Source of the DNA: Malacoraja senta
Lineage: Eukaryota
Length of the DNA: 64,000 bases
Direction of reading: 5' to 3'
NCBI GenBank assembly: GCA_038087875.1
Contig: CM075978.1
Coordinates: 41,664,001-41,728,000, forward strand
This document shows, piece after piece, positions 27-56,787 of this stretch. How positions within the stretch are numbered: the stretch's first letter is position 1; each line of letters begins with the position of its first letter. Below the pieces are notes generated by a model. That model had not been told where the DNA came from and did no database searches. It saw only the letters and a program-made list of their open reading frames with translations. A program made the translations under genes and the position numbers.

Positions 27-755
27 CATGAAATCATAAGACATGCAAGCAGAATTAAGCCATTCGTTCGGCCCATCGAGTCTGCCCCACCATTCACTCA
101 TGGCTGATCTATTTTTCCCTCTCAACCCCATTCTCCTGCCTTCTCCCCGCAACCTTTGACGCCCTTACTAATCAGGAACCTGTCAATCTCCACTTGGCCT
201 CCACTGCCGTCTGTAGTAATGTATTCAACAGAATTCACTGGTCGACTCTATCTCTGCCTCAGCTCACTCACACTGTTCCATGTCCAGATCCTAAGAACAT
301 AGAACAGTTGAGCACATGAACAGGCCCTAATCTCCTTGCCTGCACATAACTCATATCTGTCCATTACCTGCATATTCATCTGCCTATCCAAAAGCCTCTT
401 AAACGACACTATTGTCTCTGCCTCTTCACCCCTGGCAGTACTTTCTGGACACCCACCACTCCTTGTGTAAAAAGCCTGCCCCACACATTTCCTTTAACCA
501 TGTTCCCTCCCACCTTAAAAATATGCCCTCTAGTCTTTGACACTTTCATGCTGGGAAAAAGGTTCTATCTATCCTGTCCACTCTACTGTATGCCACTCAT
601 AATTTTATAAACTTCTATCAGGTCTCCCCTCAGCCTCCGATCCTCCAGAAAAAGCAAACCAAGTTTGTCCTATCAACCCATAGCTAATACCTTCCAATCC
701 AGGCAGCACTCTGATAAACCTCTTCTGCACAGTCTTTAAATCCTCCTTTGTAACC
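27..755 (-). mobile_element. Two CR1/HER1-type LINE 3' fragments (~27-240 and ~293-755)
   Basis: Same 3' UTR as 1389-1730 and 15598-15938; remnants of the CR1 ORF2 C-terminus. Confidence 0.75.
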
Positions 756-4569: not shown

Positions 4570-4918
4570 ACCCCCCCCCCCCCCCTCCACTCTCCCTTCT
4601 GGACTCACACCTAGTTCTTCTGTCCCCCTCCCTTTCCACCAATATTCCTTCCTCTAGCTTCACATTTCAAAATTCTTCAATCGCTTTGTCTCACACCTTC
4701 TGTCTTTTCATCTCTAACCTATTACCTGCCATGCGTTGTCCTGCTCCTCCTTTCTTCCCGCTTTCTTTTCCCACCCATCGACAATCAGTCTGAAGAAGAG
4801 TCCCGACCTGAAAAGTCACCTATCCATGTTCTCCAGAGATGCTATCTGACCCGCTGAGTTACTCCAGCATATTGAGTCTTCTTTTGCAAACTAGCATCTG
4901 CAGTTATTTTTTCCTACG
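4570..4918 (+). mobile_element. Penelope pLTR fragment
   Basis: Pyrimidine-rich tract, then cagtctgaagaag...ctccagagatgct...gagttactccagca...gcatctgcagtt. Confidence 0.75.
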
Positions 4919-10569: not shown

Positions 10570-11310
10570 GAAGCACAGTGGCGCAGCTGGTAGATCTGCC
10601 TCCCACAGCGTCAGAGACCCGGGTTCGAACCTGACCTCAGGTGCCGTCTGTGTGCAGTTTGCACTTTTTACCTATGTAGTGACAGATTTGTATATCGTTT
10701 CAAGGATTTAGTCCTTTAGTCACTTTAATTGAAGACAGGGGATCAGAAGATAATTGATACGCACCCACGAGATCTCCACGAGACATTCAATGCCGTCGAA
10801 AGAGAAATCTTCCAAACACAGTCTCTTGATTAATAGTTTCTTTATTGTAGTAGTAAAAACAGTAAGATATTCATCCAAACTTCTTCTTGTGTAAGTACAT
10901 TTCAATTCAATCGTGGTCATGCTCGTGCATGGTCAAAAGCTATGACCTCTCCCCCATTCTTCTTCAAACTAAACTAACTACTAGGGAGTCTGCACGAGAA
11001 TCCCAGCCGCAAACACGCCTCAGACTACGTATAAATCCCACCCACATAATTACAGGCAGATAAAATTTAAAGGTAACTGGTTATAGTTATAACATACTGA
11101 GTTAAGCTAAATGGCTACAACAACCTATGTGACCGTGTGTGTTTCCTTCAGTTGCTCCAGTTTCCTCCCACATCCCAAAGACACAGCCCAAAAGGTCGGT
11201 AGGTTAATTGGCTGCTGTAAATTGCCCTTAGTGTACAGAGTAGATAAGAAAGTGGGAGAACATAGAACCTGTGTGAACAGGTGATCGATGGTTACTGTAG
11301 ACTTGGTGGA
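10570..11310 (+). mobile_element. V-SINE interrupted by a solo LTR
   Basis: Head 10570-10674 (tggcgcagctgg, ggttcgaacc); remainder 11123-11310. Confidence 0.85.
10675..11122 (-). mobile_element. Probable solo LTR (448 bp) inserted in a V-SINE
   Basis: Termini tgtagt...acaaca (TG..CA); 5-bp TSD accta at 10670-10674 and 11123-11127; minus-strand AATAAA at 10846-10841; excision restores the SINE. Orientation is tentative. Confidence 0.72.
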
Positions 11311-11978: not shown

Positions 11979-12118
11979 CTTGTAAATTGCCCCTATTGTA
12001 TAGGATGCGAAACTAGGATGACATAGAACTAGTGTATAGGTAATCGATGGTGTGGATTCGCTGGGCCGAAGGGCCTGTTTCCATGCCGTATCTCTAAACT
12101 AAATTAGAAGTAAACTAA
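11979..12118 (+). mobile_element. V-SINE 3' fragment
   Basis: tgtaaattgcccct...gggccgaagggcctgtttccatgccgtatctctaaactaaa. Confidence 0.8.
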
Positions 12119-12886
12119 GTGGAGCAAGTACTTGGTTTTCACTTTCATCATCAAGCCTGGCATCTGCTGTGCGCTTCTCTTCTCTGTTCTGATTTAATCT
12201 CTACTTCTGTTTTGGTCATCCACTGAGCTCTGACTTCAGTTTCCCTCATGGGAATGTAATTCAATTGTGGCTGAAACATCTGCACTTTAACAGGCTTCCT
12301 CTGTTCAATTACACTTTTTGCCTGCCCAGCACTGAATTCAATTCATCCAAGCTAGATTTGTTCTCATGCCAATGAAATTGGCCTTTATCCAATTGATTAG
12401 TTTTACCTCAGAGAGGCTGAGATTATTTCCCATGGCTATTCTACACGTGATATTATGATCGCTCTTTCCTAGATGCTCCCCCAGTGGTACTTGTTCCACT
12501 TGGCCTGGCTCATTTCCCAGAAACAAGTCGAGCAGTGCTGTCTTCCTCACTCAGCCAGAAACACACGAAAGAGAATATTCTCCTGAACACCCTTCAGAAT
12601 CTCATCCCTTACTTAGTTCCTTAAGTTATTGCTGCTCCAATCTATATTAATGGAGTTTGGGGTGGCACAGTGGCGCAGCTGGTAGAGTTGTTGTCTTGCA
12701 GTGCCAGAGATCCGGGTTCGATTCTGACTACGAGTGCTCTCTGTATGGAGTTTGTACGTTCTCCATGTGATCACATGGGTTTTCCCCGAGTACTCTAGTT
12801 TCCTCCCACACTACAAAGACCTATAGCTTTGTAGGTTAATTGGCTTTGGTAAATTGTAAATTGTCCCTAGTGTACAGGATAGTGTT

Positions 12887-13020
12887 CTTCTTGTGTATGG
12901 CGTGCACAGCCTAAAGTTGTAGGTCAACTTGTTCTATTTGATCTATTTGTTTGTGCACGTCGGGTTGATTGCATTAGTCGAAACAGGGTGGACCACGTGA
13001 AGGTTCCAATCTCCCACCCC
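12887..13020 (-). mobile_element. Short non-autonomous retroelement (134 bp) with ribozyme head and (AAG)n tail, inserted in a V-SINE
   Basis: TSD aggatagtgtt at 12876-12886 and 13021-13031 (12 bp if c12875/c13020 is counted). Tail ...gccatacacaagaag. Removing the insert restores the host SINE. Confidence 0.9.
12967..13020 (-). ncRNA. Minimal HDV-like (CPEB3-type) self-cleaving ribozyme, 54 nt
   Basis: GGGGUGG GA GAUUGGA ACC UUCACGU GGU CCACCCU G UUUCGA CUAA UGCAAUC. P1 7 bp with G1.U36 wobble, P2 6/7 bp, P3 3 bp, L3 UUCACGU, single-bp P1.1 (C22-G37), J4/2 C-U-A-A with putative catalytic C at 12977. Confidence 0.85.
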
Positions 13021-13457
13021 AGGATAGTGTTAATGTCCAGGGGTGATTGCTGGCCGGCGTGGACTCGGTGGGCCGAAGGGCCTGTTTCCATGCTGTATTG
13101 CTGTGATGCACTAATGGAATGACCTTAGTGACTTTAAAGTCTCTTAACATTCCCATCACTTTAAACTTTCAAGTCTCTAAAGTCATTCCATCATTGCTTC
13201 ACTGTGTCCATTGTGCATCTCGGCAATTTTCCTGCAGATTTGCTTATCAATATCCCACCAGCTGGTGATCTACAGAACAATCCCAATGATCGTAATGATC
13301 CTTAACCAGTGAATATGAGGTCCACCAGAGGGTCCAGGCATGATGTGATGACAGACTAGTGTAGATGGGGCATGTTGGTCGACGTGGACAATTTTGGTTG
13401 ATGAGCCTGTTTCCATGCTATCTGACTCTATGGCTCTATTGATGTATTCATTGTAAG

Positions 13458-13682
13458 TGACCAGTGATCACCCCGTACACTAGCACTATCTTACATACAA
13501 TTTTTACCAAAGTCAATTAACCTGAACTTCTTTGGAGTGTGGGAAGAATCTGGAGCAGAGAAAACCCATGTGGTCACAGGGAGAACATGCAAACTCCATA
13601 CAGACAACACCCGTAGTCAGGATTGAACCCGGGTCTCTGCCACTGTAAGGCAGCAACTCTACAACTATTCCAATATGCCGCC
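13458..13682 (-). mobile_element. V-SINE
   Basis: Family head and V-domain. Confidence 0.82.
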
Positions 13683-13695
13683 TCGAACCCAATCC

Positions 13696-13972
13696 TACCT
13701 GCCCATTTCATTTCCCCCACATTCCCATCACTTCCCCACCTCTAGATTCTACCCTTCATTAGCATACTGGGGGCAATTTACAGTGGTTAATTAACGTACC
13801 AACCTGCACGTCATTGGAATGGGGGCTGGAACTGGGGCGTCCAAAGGAAACAGAGTGCACAGTCACAGGGTAAACACGCAAACTCCACACAGACTACACC
13901 AGAGGTCAGGATTCAACGCAGGTCACTGGAGCTGTGAGGCAGCAGCTCTACTAGCTGCACCACTATGCTGCC
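13696..13972 (-). mobile_element. V-SINE, older subfamily
   Basis: Head aggcagcatagtggtgcagctagtagagctgctgcctcacagctcc; same subfamily as 56840-57172. Confidence 0.78.
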
Positions 13973-14194
13973 TAAATAGGGATGAAGTGAATGTTTGAAC
14001 AACCAACTATGTCTGTAATTCATTTGTAGCATAATAATGTAGCCCAATAAAGAACACAGTCTCCCAATTGACGATTGGGATAATTAATCAGCATTCAGTC
14101 CTTAGCTGGAACTACAATAGTGGATGCTAAAGTCAGTCTTGTGACACTCGGATTAAAACTGGAAATTTTGTCCAATATTGTCTGTAGTCCAGTG

Positions 14195-14725
14195 ATATCC
14201 ATGGGATAATGTACATTTTCATTTCACTGGAGCAGGCGATTAGCTACAATAATGGACAAACCCTGAGAAAATTGGGCAGGAATGACATAAGTACATTAAT
14301 ACAATAAGTGGCAGGACCCTGAGGAGCATTGATGTACCAATAGATTTTGGGGTGCAAATCTATAGCTCCCTAAAAGTAGCAACACAAGTAGATAGGGTGG
14401 TAAAGAATCTGGATGCTTACTTGTCCAGCAGTCAGGGCACTGAGCATAAAGGTCGGGAGAATCTGATGCAGCTCCATAAAACTTTGGATATACATTTGGA
14501 GTATTGCGTTTAGTTTTGGTTGCCCCACTTCAGGAAGAACATGGAGGCTTTGGAGAGGATGGTTTGCATGATATTGTCTGAATTAGAGAGTATCAGCTAT
14601 AAGGAAAGGTTGGACAAATTAGTATTGTTTTATTTGCAGTGTCAGAGACTGTGATTCAACTGATGATCATATATAAAATTATGAGGAACACAAATAGGAT
14701 AGATAGTCAGAGTTTTTTTCCCCAT
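14195..14725 (+). mobile_element. Degraded CR1 ORF2 C-terminal fragment
   Basis: LGVQI..., HLEYCV.FWLPH.RK and YKIMR...DRVDSQ.FFP-like remnants. Confidence 0.7.
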
Positions 14726-14735
14726 TTTTACATTT

Positions 14736-15001
14736 TTAGCGTTAGTTTTTGTTTTAGAGATACATCGTGGAAACAGGCCCTTTGGCCCACCAAAGACATG
14801 CCAACCAGCGATCACTTGTACACTAGTTCTATCCTGTAACCCAAAAACCTGCACATCTTTGGAATGTGGGAGGAAACCCAAGCAGTCACAGTCAGGAAGA
14901 ACGTACAAACTCCGTACAGACAGCACCCGTAGTCAGGATTGAACCCGGGTCTCTGGCACTGTAAGGCAGCAGCTCGACCACTGCGCCACTGTGCCGCCGC
15001 C
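14736..15001 (-). mobile_element. V-SINE
   Basis: Family head, core and tail. Confidence 0.85.
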
Positions 15002-15102
15002 TCGAAGTATCTCAGTAACCCCACTGGCCACCCTTCCCTCAAGATCCCTCAGTGACCTCACTGATCGCCCCTCACTCAAGTTGCTTCAATGAGCCCAATC
15101 AT

Positions 15103-15208
15103 TAGTCAAGTCAAGTCAAGAGAGTTTATTGTCATGTGTCCCAGATAGGACAATGAAATTCTTGCTTGCTGCAGCACAACAGAATATTGTAAGCATAAAT
15201 ACAGAACA
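15103..15208 (-). mobile_element. Rex1-type 3' tail fragment with (cttga)n end
   Basis: gcaagaatttcattgtcc...acatgacaataaac followed by cttga repeats. Confidence 0.65.
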
Positions 15209-15232
15209 TTACTTTAATAGTAATGAGTAATT

Positions 15233-15284
15233 GGGGTCAAGGAAAGAGCGTTCACGTCACGGCCCTGTTTCCACCAATCTTTCC
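15233..15284 (+). ncRNA. Second minimal HDV-like (CPEB3-type) ribozyme, 52 nt
   Basis: GGGGUC AA GGAAAGA GCG UUCACGU CAC GGCCCU G UUUCCA CCAA UCUUUCC. P1 6 bp with G1.U wobble, P2 7/7 bp, P3 2/3 bp (A15259 looks like CpG decay of CGC), L3 UUCACGU, putative catalytic C at 15274. Confidence 0.82.
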
Positions 15285-15407
15285 ACCACCACGCACAAGA
15301 AGCACAAGATGCGACAAGACAGACACCATTGTGTGGAGATGCCGAGAAGTGTGTTCAGCTCTGGCTGAACAACTTCTAATCTTGTGTGTGGACTCGATAA
15401 GAAGAAG
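15233..15407 (+). mobile_element. Short non-autonomous retroelement (175 bp) with ribozyme head and (AAG)3 tail
   Basis: TSD aatgagtaatt at 15222-15232 and 15408-15418; ends ...gactcgataagaagaag. Confidence 0.9.
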
Positions 15408-15597
15408 AATGAGTAATTCCCATGGAGGTTGATGCTAGTCACATGCTTGTTCTGTTGTTTCCTGTTCGCCAGCTCCGGGGGCTTTATGGGTGCTGTTGAA
15501 TAGAGTTGACTGCTGCCTATGTTGGGAATTCTGCTCCTTTGCTTCTGAGAGTCCCATCGGACCTTCACATGCTGAGACCTGCAGAGAGCGGTTCTAG

Positions 15598-15938
15598 GTT
15601 CATAAGTTCATAAGTTATAGAAGAAAAATTAGGCCATTCGGCCCATCAATTGTATTCCACCATTCAATGGCTGATTTCCCCCTCAACCCCATTCTCCTGC
15701 CTTCTCCCCATAACCCCGACACCGTACTAATCAAGAATCTGTCAATCGCCGCCTTAAAAATATCCATTGACATGGCCTCCACAGCCGTCTGTGGCAATGA
15801 ATTCCACAGATTCACCACCCTCTGACTAAAGAAATTCCTCCTTATCTCCTTTCTAAATGTAGGTCCTGTTATTCTGACTCTGGTTCTAGACTCTCCCACT
15901 AGTGGAAACATCCTCTCCACATCCACTCCATCTAGGCC
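15598..15938 (-). mobile_element. CR1/HER1-type LINE 3' end
   Basis: GLDGVDVERMFPLVGESRTR...RNFFSQRVVNLWNSLPQTAVEAMSMDIFKAAIDRFL. Confidence 0.9.
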
Positions 15939-50818: not shown

Positions 50819-51763
50819 GGGTACACAAAAATGCTGGAGAAACTCAGCGGGTGCAGCAGCATCTATGGAGCGAAGGAAATAGGCAACGTTTCGGGCCGAA
50901 ACCCTTCTTCAGACTGATAGGGGGTGGGGAGAAGAAAGGAAAAAAGGAAAAAGGCGGAGGAGGAGCCCGAGGGCTGGGGGAGGGGAGGAGACAACCAGAG
51001 GGCTGATGAAGGGGAGGGGACAGCAAGGGCTAGCAGAATTGGGAGAATTCAATGTTCAAGCCCCCAGGATGTAGACTGCCCAAGCGGAATATGAGGTGCA
51101 TTTCCTCCAATTTACGGTGTTGCTCGCTGTGGCCATGGAGGAGACCCAGGACAGAGAGGTCAGATACGGAATGGGAGGGGGAGTTGAAGTGCTGAGCCAC
51201 CGGGAGGTCAAGTTGGTTACTGCGGACCGACCGGAGGTGTTCGGCGAAACGATCGCCAAGCCTCCGCTTGGTCTCACCGATGTAGATCAGCTGGCATCTA
51301 GAGCAGCGGATGCAATAGATGACGTTGGAGGAGATGCAGGTGAACCTCTGTCGCACCTGGAACGACTGCTTGGGTCCTTGAATGGAGTCGAGGGGGGAGG
51401 TGAAGGGACAAGTGTTGCATCTCTTGCGGTTGCAAGGGAAAGTACCAGGGGAGGGGGTGGTATGGGAGGGAAGGGAAGAATTGACAAGGGAGTTACGGAG
51501 GGAGCGGTCTTTGCGGAAGGCAGACATGGGGGGAGATGGGAAGATGTGGCGAGTGGTGGGGTCACGTTGGAGGTGGCGAAACTGACGGAGGATCACTTGT
51601 TGTATGTGACGGCTGGTGGGGTGAAAGGTGAGGACTAGGGGGACTCTGCCTTTGTTGTGAGTGGGGGGATGGGGAGAGAGAGCAGTGTTGCGGGGTATGG
51701 CAGAGACCCTGGTGCGAGCCTCATCTATGGTGGAGGAGGGGAACCCCCGTTCCCTGAAGAATG
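50819..51763 (-). mobile_element. 5'-truncated Penelope-like element (Neptune-type): RT thumb/linker, Cys motif, GIY-YIG endonuclease and 3' pLTR
   Basis: Uninterrupted frame 51763-51030 with CNRKRCNTC, VIYCIRCSRCQLIYIGET, RFAEH, HFN and GLN motifs; 3' terminal repeat carries a hammerhead motif. Confidence 0.92.
50885..50912 (-). ncRNA. Minimal type I hammerhead ribozyme-like motif in a Penelope pLTR
   Basis: CUGAAGA-A-GGGU(UUCG)GCCC-GAAA-CG-UU; palindromic AACGUU replaces helix III; helix I pairing weak. Confidence 0.6.
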
Positions 51764-51840
51764 TTGTGGATTGGATGTGGAAGAGGCAAAGTGAATGGAG
51801 AATACTTTGCATCTCCCATTATCATCATATTTGCCTCATC

Positions 51841-55609: not shown

Positions 55610-56689
55610 CTACTGACCGACTACTGATAGACTACTGACCGACATCCACTATAAACCCACTGACTCCCATGGCTATCTGGACTACACTTCTTCCCACCCT
55701 GCTTCCTGTAAGGACTCCATCCCCTACTCCCAATTCCTCCGTCTACGCCACATCTGCACCCAGGATGAGGTGTTCCACACCAGGGCATCGGAGATGTCCT
55801 CATTCTTCAGAGAATGGGGGTTCCCCTCTTCTACTATAGATGAGGCTCTCACCAGGGTCTCTTCTATACCCTGTGACTCTGCTCTCACTCCCCATCTTCC
55901 CACTCGTAACAAGGGCAGAGTCCACCCTTGTCCTCACCTTCCACCCTACCAGCCATCACATACAACAAATAATCCTCCGACATTTTCGCCACCTCCAAAG
56001 TGATTCCACCACTTGCCACATCTTCCCATCTCCTCCCTTGTCTGCTTTCCGCAGAAACCGCTCCCTCCGTAACTCCCTGGTCAATTCGTCCCTTCCCACC
56101 CCCTCTCCAGGCACTTTCCCTTACAACCGCAGGAAATGCTACACTTGTCGCTTTACCTCCCCCCTTGACTCCATTCAAGGACCCAAGCAGTCTTTCCAGG
56201 TATTCACCTGCACCGCCTCCAACCTCATCTATTGCATCCGCTGCTCTAGATGTCAGCTGCTCTACATCGGTGAGAGCAAGCGTAGGCTTGGCGATCGCTT
56301 CGCTGAACACCTCCGCTCAGTTTGCAATAACCAACCTGATCTCCCGGTGGCTCAGCACTTCAACTCCCCCTCCCATTCCAAATCCGACCTTTCTGTCCTG
56401 GGCCTCCTCCATGGCCAGAGGACCACCGGAAATTGGAGGAGCAGCATCTCATATTTTGCATCCCCGCGGTAAGAACATTGACTTCTCTAATTTCAGGTTG
56501 TCCCTACTTTCTCCTCCCCTTCTCAGCTCTCCCTCAGCCCACTAGCTCCACCACTTCCTTTCTTCTTCCCGCCCTCTCCCCCACCCTCACATCAGTCCAA
56601 AGAAGGGTCTCGACCCGAAACGTGGCCTATTTCCTTCGCTCCATAGATGCTGCCTCATCCGCTGAGTTTCTCCAGCATTTTTGTCTACC
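55610..56689 (+). mobile_element. 5'-truncated, frameshifted Penelope-like element (RT C-terminus, GIY-YIG, pLTR)
   Basis: YKPTDSHGYLDYTSSHP...IPYSQFLRL...; LIYCIRCSRCQLLYIGES; clearly homologous to the 50819-51763 copy; frameshifts near 55920 and 56420. Confidence 0.92.
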
Positions 56690-56691
56690 AA

Positions 56692-56787
56692 CAGACACAA
56701 AGTGCTGGAGTAACTCAGCGGGTCAGGCAGCATCTCTGGAGAAAAAGGATAGGTGACGTCTCGGGTCAGGACCCTTCTTCAGACTGA
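56692..56787 (-). mobile_element. Penelope pLTR fragment, tail-to-tail with the 55610-56689 copy
   Basis: cagacacaaagtgctggagtaactcagcgggtcagg...acccttcttcagactga. Confidence 0.8.

Follow-up and report, generated by a model that had tools for sequence, protein, structure and literature searches.

Candidate bipartite retroposons with P4-less HDV-like ribozyme folds at their 5' ends in a genomic region of Malacoraja senta

Introduction

Retroposons that lack open reading frames (ORFs) and consist of the two ends of a long interspersed element (LINE), the 5' end bearing a ribozyme, have been described for the R2, Ingi/L1Tc, and RTE groups (PMC5786205, PMC3414825, PMC4035085, PMC6765202). Internal deletion is a known origin of such bipartite non-autonomous LINEs, and Kojima explicitly tied the bipartite design of the RTE and Vingi derivatives to 5' self-cleaving ribozymes (PMC5786205). 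In NARTc, RIME, and SIDER, the first ~77 nt constitute a ribozyme of the hepatitis delta virus (HDV) type (Pr77/L1TcRz), and the element ends are common with those of autonomous elements (PMC3185411, PMC4035085, PMC3383444). Here we analyze two short insertions, elements 1 and 2, found in a 64,000-nt stretch of the Malacoraja senta genome (assembly GCA_038087875.1, contig CM075978.1, positions 41,664,001 to 41,728,000; below, the window), each of which begins with an HDV-like ribozyme fold devoid of the P4 helix.

HDV-like ribozymes of this reduced kind are known almost exclusively from gut phages. Theta and other minimal HDV-like ribozymes without P4 self-cleave in vitro; phages account for about 99% of the minimal ribozymes in the original study, which recovered none from the eukaryotic genomes searched, and the theta ribozymes, located 3' of phage tRNAs, process tRNA trailers (PMC10879173). 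Since this subclass is active without P4, the helix is not strictly required (PMC10879173). The analysis below suggests, with a probability of about 0.72, that elements 1 and 2 are ORF-less, LINE-dependent bipartite retroposons composed of a 5' module with a P4-less ribozyme of the HDV/CPEB3 type and a 3' module recognized by a LINE with an apurinic/apyrimidinic endonuclease (APE).

Two retroposed insertions

Reading of both strands and a script-based check of the coordinates placed element 1 (134 nt) on the minus strand at 13020-12887 and element 2 (175 nt) on the plus strand at 15233-15407. The positions and the 11-bp target-site duplications (TSDs) given in a preliminary description of this DNA proved to be exact. 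The two insertions are built as follows.

13021..13031, no strand: TSD of element 1, copy by the 5' end, AGGATAGTGTT on the plus strand, identical to 12876-12886
12967..13020, minus strand: head of element 1, a 54-nt minimal P4-less HDV-like ribozyme fold identified by the helix/core parse and the strict descriptor; G1 is 13020 and the C at the catalytic position is 12977
12893..12966, minus strand: body of element 1, whose 3' ~45 nt form a module with a hairpin and with homology to its counterpart in element 2; a long-range stem and an inner hairpin are predicted
12887..12892, minus strand: tail of element 1, (AAG)2
12876..12886, no strand: TSD of element 1, copy by the tail, AGGATAGTGTT, perfect over 11 bp
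15222..15232, no strand: TSD of element 2, 5' copy, AATGAGTAATT, perfect over 11 bp
15233..15284, plus strand: head of element 2, a 52-nt minimal HDV/CPEB3-like ribozyme fold identified by the parse and the strict descriptor; G1 is 15233 and the C at the catalytic position is 15274
15285..15398, plus strand: body of element 2, the 3' ~42 nt being homologous to element 1, with a predicted outer stem and long inner hairpin
15399..15407, plus strand: tail of element 2, (AAG)3
15408..15418, no strand: TSD of element 2, 3' copy, AATGAGTAATT

Element 1 lies in antisense orientation inside a tRNA-derived short interspersed element (SINE), and alignment of seven other window copies of this host SINE showed an uninterrupted sequence at the insertion site, providing paralogous empty sites. 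In element 2, the bases outside the TSD differ at both ends, and thus its start at G 15233 is unambiguous. Both elements are therefore supported as genuine retroposed insertions, by the TSDs in each case and additionally by the empty sites in the case of element 1. Both TSDs open with AA, which could belong to the tail instead.

Ribozyme-like heads and their compensatory changes

Threading of the first 52-54 nt of the elements revealed in both of them a nested double pseudoknot, in which P1 and P2 are interleaved with P3 and P1.1. The parts of the fold are listed below from the 5' side.

P1: GGGGUGG/CCACCCU in element 1, seven pairs including G1.U; GGGGUC/GGCCCU in element 2, six pairs with two G.U, the first being G1.U
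J1/2: GA in element 1; AA in element 2
P2: GAUUGGA/UGCAAUC in element 1, 6/7 paired with one G.G mismatch; GGAAAGA/UCUUUCC in element 2, 7/7 paired
P3: ACC/GGU in element 1, 3/3 paired; GCG/CAC in element 2, 2/3 paired with one C.A mismatch, where CGC would pair
L3: UUCACGU in both elements
P1.1: GU with AC of L3 in both elements
Linker replacing P4, 5 nt: UUCGA in element 1; UUCCA in element 2 (UUCSA)
J4/2: C then UAA, followed by P2', in element 1; C then CAA, followed by P2', in element 2

G1, the first base after the TSD, pairs in both elements with the U that ends P1', so that a wobble closes P1. The P4 helix of HDV-like ribozymes is present in neither head, its place being taken by the 5-nt UUCSA. 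L3, P1.1, and the C at the catalytic position are the same in the two heads, and the rest of the unpaired core is near-identical. At the same time, both partners of seven pairs differ between the heads with pairing retained; four of these pairs belong to P2, two to P3, and one to P1. These double-sided changes around an almost invariant single-stranded core form a signature of constrained RNA structure. The pairs were counted by hand from the threading, as MAFFT put the 5' strand of P1 in the wrong place when the three ribozymes were aligned. Minimum free energy (MFE) folding of the heads gave z about 0 relative to shuffled sequences and is not informative, since pseudoknots are outside the MFE model. 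Thus, a fold starting at the first base of each element and co-varying stems around a near-identical core, both proposed in the preliminary description, are borne out by the sequences, as is the loss of P4, although the linker, earlier given as ~6 nt, was parsed as 5 nt.

The structure-only descriptor in its strict form (linker of at most 8 nt, P2 of at least 6 bp) detected two sites in the window, which are the two heads, compared to a mean of 0.1 and a maximum of 1 in 40 random sequences generated by a first-order Markov model trained on the window. A loose version found five sites against about two expected, three of them being junk, and proves little alone. For the linear core pattern shared by the heads, the expectation is 0.00-0.02 sites per window, and degenerate scans of the window with three mismatches allowed yielded no site beyond the two heads. 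Both heads have the full fold, and each begins at the base adjoining the TSD. The presence of two HDV-like heads is more than chance.

Similarity to phage and CPEB3 ribozymes

A search for the same 19-base core returned no matches in viral contigs and 33 exact matches in JGI metagenomes and prokaryotic genomes, 32 of which lack P1 and P3 pairing. The only structured match is a P4-less HDV-like ribozyme (locus L012, positions 226-283, minus strand; JGI contig Ga0310691_10500004), whose core ACC-UUCACGU-GGU...CCCU-GU-UUCAAC-UAA is almost the same as that of element 1. It starts at the base following the 3' end of tRNA-Thr within an array of nine tRNAs, and was assigned to the theta type because it abuts a tRNA 3' end in such an array. 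We therefore rejected this phage ribozyme as a relative of the retroposons. Elements 1 and 2 resemble the theta ribozymes in lacking P4 and in the length of about 55 nt, but differ from them in heading vertebrate retroposons with TSDs and in not being adjacent to tRNAs. Since a core like that of element 1 occurs in a ribozyme of the class that cleaves in vitro (PMC10879173), the P4-less core of the two elements is plausibly competent for cleavage.

Element 2 matched the Rfam family CPEB3_ribozyme (RF00622) with 26.7 bits, below the gathering threshold of 35 (E-value 2.6e-5 in a 241-nt search). In this alignment, G1 of element 2 coincides with the cleavage site of CPEB3, the stretch P3-L3-P3'-P1' being near-identical: CPEB3 has GCG UUCACGU CGC for P3-L3-P3', with CAC for P3' in element 2. 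P1 is also near-identical, and the two sequences share GU for P1.1 and a C-N-A-A junction (CGAA in CPEB3). In contrast, the CPEB3 ribozyme has a P4 of ~18 nt and is single-copy, intronic, and restricted to mammals. As the same core occurs in the phage ribozyme, the similarity between element 2 and CPEB3 may stem from the small range of sequences that can function rather than from descent.

Bodies, tails, and the common 3' module

The segments directly following the ribozymes show no significant similarity between the two elements. By contrast, the last ~45 nt are homologous: their local alignment score is 31, compared to 13.8 +/- 2.7 for shuffled sequences, none of which (0/500) reached 31. 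Hence the earlier view of two different families with unrelated bodies was overstated; the dissimilarity holds for the segments just past the ribozymes and fails for the 3' module. In both elements the 3' region is predicted to fold into a hairpin framed by an outer stem, and the body of element 2 has an MFE of -42 kcal/mol (z = -4.24), with 0/200 shuffled sequences as stable. The common module would be the part that a LINE reverse transcriptase recognizes. It is followed by the (AAG)n tails of the preliminary description, with two repeats in element 1 and three in element 2.

An open frame of 69 aa (15223-15432, plus strand) extends through element 2 from one TSD to the other. A protein search found no relative of it, and therefore the frame is probably fortuitous. 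One more (AAG)3 site (10880-10888, minus strand), preceded by an end ...ACACAAGAAGAAG similar to the terminus of element 1, was dropped from consideration, as neither a ribozyme head nor a TSD was recognized there; this site may represent a relative truncated at the 5' end or may have arisen by chance.

Promoter signals

No tRNA was found at either element in a tRNA search of 12600-15700, and an Rfam small-RNA search of both elements gave no tRNA, 5S, or 7SL match. Neither element has an A box or a B box within one substitution of the consensus, while those of the neighboring tRNA-derived SINE, used as a positive control, were detected. A scan of the elements with a sigma-70-type consensus gave no promoter signal. 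The elements thus lack the head of tRNA, 5S, or 7SL origin and the RNA polymerase III (Pol III) boxes, as had been claimed initially, and neither is a classical Pol III SINE.

The tRNA-derived SINE itself is abundant, with 15 copies in 64 kb: the copy at 12600-13110, with an A box at 12663, a B box at 12715, and a conserved GGCCGAAGGGCCTGTTTCC core, and 14 others (e.g. at 12064, 36231, 58897, and 60594). A GGGCCTGTTTCCA stretch of this SINE coincides with the P1'-linker region of element 2 in 13/14 bases; the match is not significant (blastn E-value 4.4) and is probably a coincidence.

Other repeats in the window

Pfam analysis of the long ORFs in the window yielded only Penelope-type GIY-YIG matches and no APE or reverse transcriptase partner. 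These Penelope-like elements are represented by ORFs at 51033-51812 (minus strand) and 55840-56469 (plus strand), whose weak GIY-YIG scores of 22.3 and 19.4 bits are below the Pfam threshold of 22.6. The window also contains a recurring CTGAAGAAGGGTCTCGACCCGAAACGTC motif that resembles the minimal hammerhead core (CUGANGA...GAAAC) and was not reported by the Rfam scan at gathering thresholds. Its copies are located near the following positions.

Plus strand: CTGAAGAAGGGTCTCGACCCGAAACGTC motif near 4793, 50549, 56600, and 59354
Minus strand: CTGAAGAAGGGTCTCGACCCGAAACGTC motif near 56779, 53889, 50909, 50711, 35877, 25453, and 24156

Proposed mechanism and alternative explanations

The elements appear to join a 5' ribozyme module through a short body to a 3' module made of a hairpin, a conserved terminal stretch, and (AAG)n. 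From this design we infer catalysis, read-through transcription, and a partner LINE, which could act together in the following way. A promoter-less copy would be transcribed within a longer transcript of RNA polymerase II, and the ribozyme would cleave directly 5' of G1, setting the RNA 5' end. The protein of the partner LINE would then bind the 3' module and nick the target at TT^A, and the (AAG)n tail would anneal through AA/TT microhomology and prime reverse transcription. A full-length cDNA would result in an insertion that begins exactly at G1 and has an 11-bp duplication on either side. The TSDs opening with AA and the AAG tails fit the annealing of an RNA tail to a nick ending in TT (bottom strand TT^A).

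Several observations weigh against this scheme. The Rfam scan of the whole window at gathering thresholds reported nothing, and in the Rfam search element 1 had no match at E<=10 to the HDV family or to any other ribozyme family. The stems, said to stay paired in the preliminary description, do so at most positions but imperfectly, with one helix mismatch in each copy (G.G in P2 of element 1 and C.A in P3 of element 2). For this reason both copies are probably decaying; the C.A mismatch would be expected if CGC had undergone CpG decay. The TSD of element 1 could be 12 bp long, and thus its G1 is uncertain by one base. According to blastn and nhmmer searches with both elements, each is single-copy in the window, and neither a LINE fragment nor a LINE with a matching end was found there by the same programs. 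In favor of the scheme, in a run index, DNA runs of six organism labels hold a fraction of 0.72-0.89 of the sampled 31-mers of element 2, and RNA runs of three organism labels hold 0.44-0.61; such values agree with a transcribed and conserved family of many copies, but may also come from an orthologous locus in close relatives.

The alternative that survives best, though it seems unlikely to us, is that the pseudoknotted head binds or recruits the LINE protein or stabilizes the RNA rather than cleaving itself, and that the end at G1 is a transcription start or the end of a LINE 5' untranslated region (UTR). Such a role has a precedent in R2, whose protein binds a pseudoknot in the 5' ribozyme region independently of cleavage (PMC6765202), and in engineered systems based on Vingi and RTE, donor RNAs are placed between 5' and 3' UTRs (PMC13708176); the mismatched helices in both copies also agree with it. 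On the other hand, two otherwise diverged heads have kept all the catalytic hallmarks (G1.U, P1.1, L3, and C followed by NAA), the same core is found in the theta-type phage ribozyme, a member of a class shown to cleave (PMC10879173), and no promoter signal emerged from the searches for Pol III boxes, tRNA-like heads, and sigma-70-type sequences.

It is also improbable that the elements are isolated products of internal deletion in a ribozyme-headed LINE, or a pair of deletion variants within a single LINE lineage, and not two established, self-amplifying SINE-like families. The single-copy status of each element in 64 kb, the homology of the 3' modules, and the known origin of such elements by internal deletion (PMC5786205) are in agreement with this possibility, but the words of element 2 occur in runs of many organism labels and in RNA assemblies, and the many compensatory changes in the heads point to long separate evolution under selection.

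Very little speaks for a chance resemblance to HDV-like ribozymes or for Pol III SINEs with an unrecognized promoter: the loose descriptor does expect about two sites and finds three junk ones, 32/33 linear core matches in the bacterial and metagenomic collections fail to fold, and neither head reaches the Rfam gathering threshold, but two independent heads that share the 7-nt L3, have near-identical junctions, and are located exactly at TSD boundaries, the expectations of 0.1 sites for the strict descriptor and at most 0.02 for the core pattern, and the absence of both A and B boxes make this explanation highly implausible.

A more far-reaching version of the proposal that elements 1 and 2 are ribozyme-headed, LINE-dependent retroposons should be regarded as doubtful. 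It would hold that a vertebrate genome harbors abundant, actively selected retroposon families in which a P4-less HDV-like ribozyme of ~53 nt is the sole substitute for a promoter, and that heads of the element 2 type, which among non-mammalian sequences come closest to the core of the CPEB3 ribozyme, represent the kind of head that was exapted as the mammalian CPEB3 ribozyme.

Comparison with known LINE derivatives

If the proposed scheme is correct, the elements would be very compact mobile units of about 135-175 nt that need neither a promoter nor an ORF, with a 53-nt ribozyme that sets the 5' end and a ~45-nt tail that borrows the LINE enzyme. With them, the LINE lineages equipped with 5' ribozymes would grow by one. 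The elements would also offer a natural minimal template design (5' UTR plus 3' UTR) for RNA-templated gene insertion with RTE- or Vingi-type enzymes, and a concrete reference for studying the as yet unexplained emergence of the CPEB3 ribozyme. Should the family consensus cleave, the P4-less minimal HDV-like ribozymes, otherwise essentially of phage origin according to the theta-ribozyme study, would have a vertebrate, and thus eukaryotic, home.

The short internally deleted elements (SIDEs) of R2 in Drosophila (PMC3414825) are similar to elements 1 and 2 in that they are ORF-less and keep a 5' HDV-like ribozyme together with the 3' end used for target-primed reverse transcription. Their 5' end is set by self-cleavage from a co-transcript and they are mobilized in trans, as is proposed for elements 1 and 2. 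R2 and its SIDEs are site-specific in 28S ribosomal DNA, depend on a restriction-like endonuclease, and have large ribozymes (about 184 nt), whereas elements 1 and 2 are dispersed and combine a 52-54-nt P4-less ribozyme with 11-bp TSDs, TT^A nick sites, and (AAG)n tails, a behavior of the APE type.

NARTc, RIME, and SIDER of the L1Tc/Ingi clade (PMC3185411, PMC4035085, PMC3383444) are closer in being dispersed non-autonomous derivatives of APE-type LINEs. These trypanosomatid elements end in poly(A), and their head, with a full-size ribozyme, also serves as an internal promoter (Pr77); in contrast, elements 1 and 2 reside in a vertebrate host, have a microsatellite tail and no P4, and gave no promoter signal. 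The bipartite RTE and Vingi derivatives (Bov-A, WALLSI3, and derivatives of Vingi-1_EE; PMC5786205), which were compared by design only, likewise join a LINE 5' end to a 3' end and occur in vertebrates.

The features of bipartite LINEs found here are the TSDs, the empty paralogous site, the (AAG)n tails, and the lack of an ORF with a protein relative. The novelty assigned to such an architecture at first was overstated, since ribozyme-headed bipartite LINE derivatives had already been described (PMC5786205, PMC3414825, PMC4035085, PMC6765202), and the advance is thus a variant and not a new category. In the literature searched, we found no description of a P4-less head among the bipartite LINE derivatives. 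The apparent novelty lies in a vertebrate host being combined with dispersed insertion of the APE type, a microsatellite tail, and a P4-less ribozyme of ~53 nt, possibly involving a LINE clade that has not yet been credited with a ribozyme.

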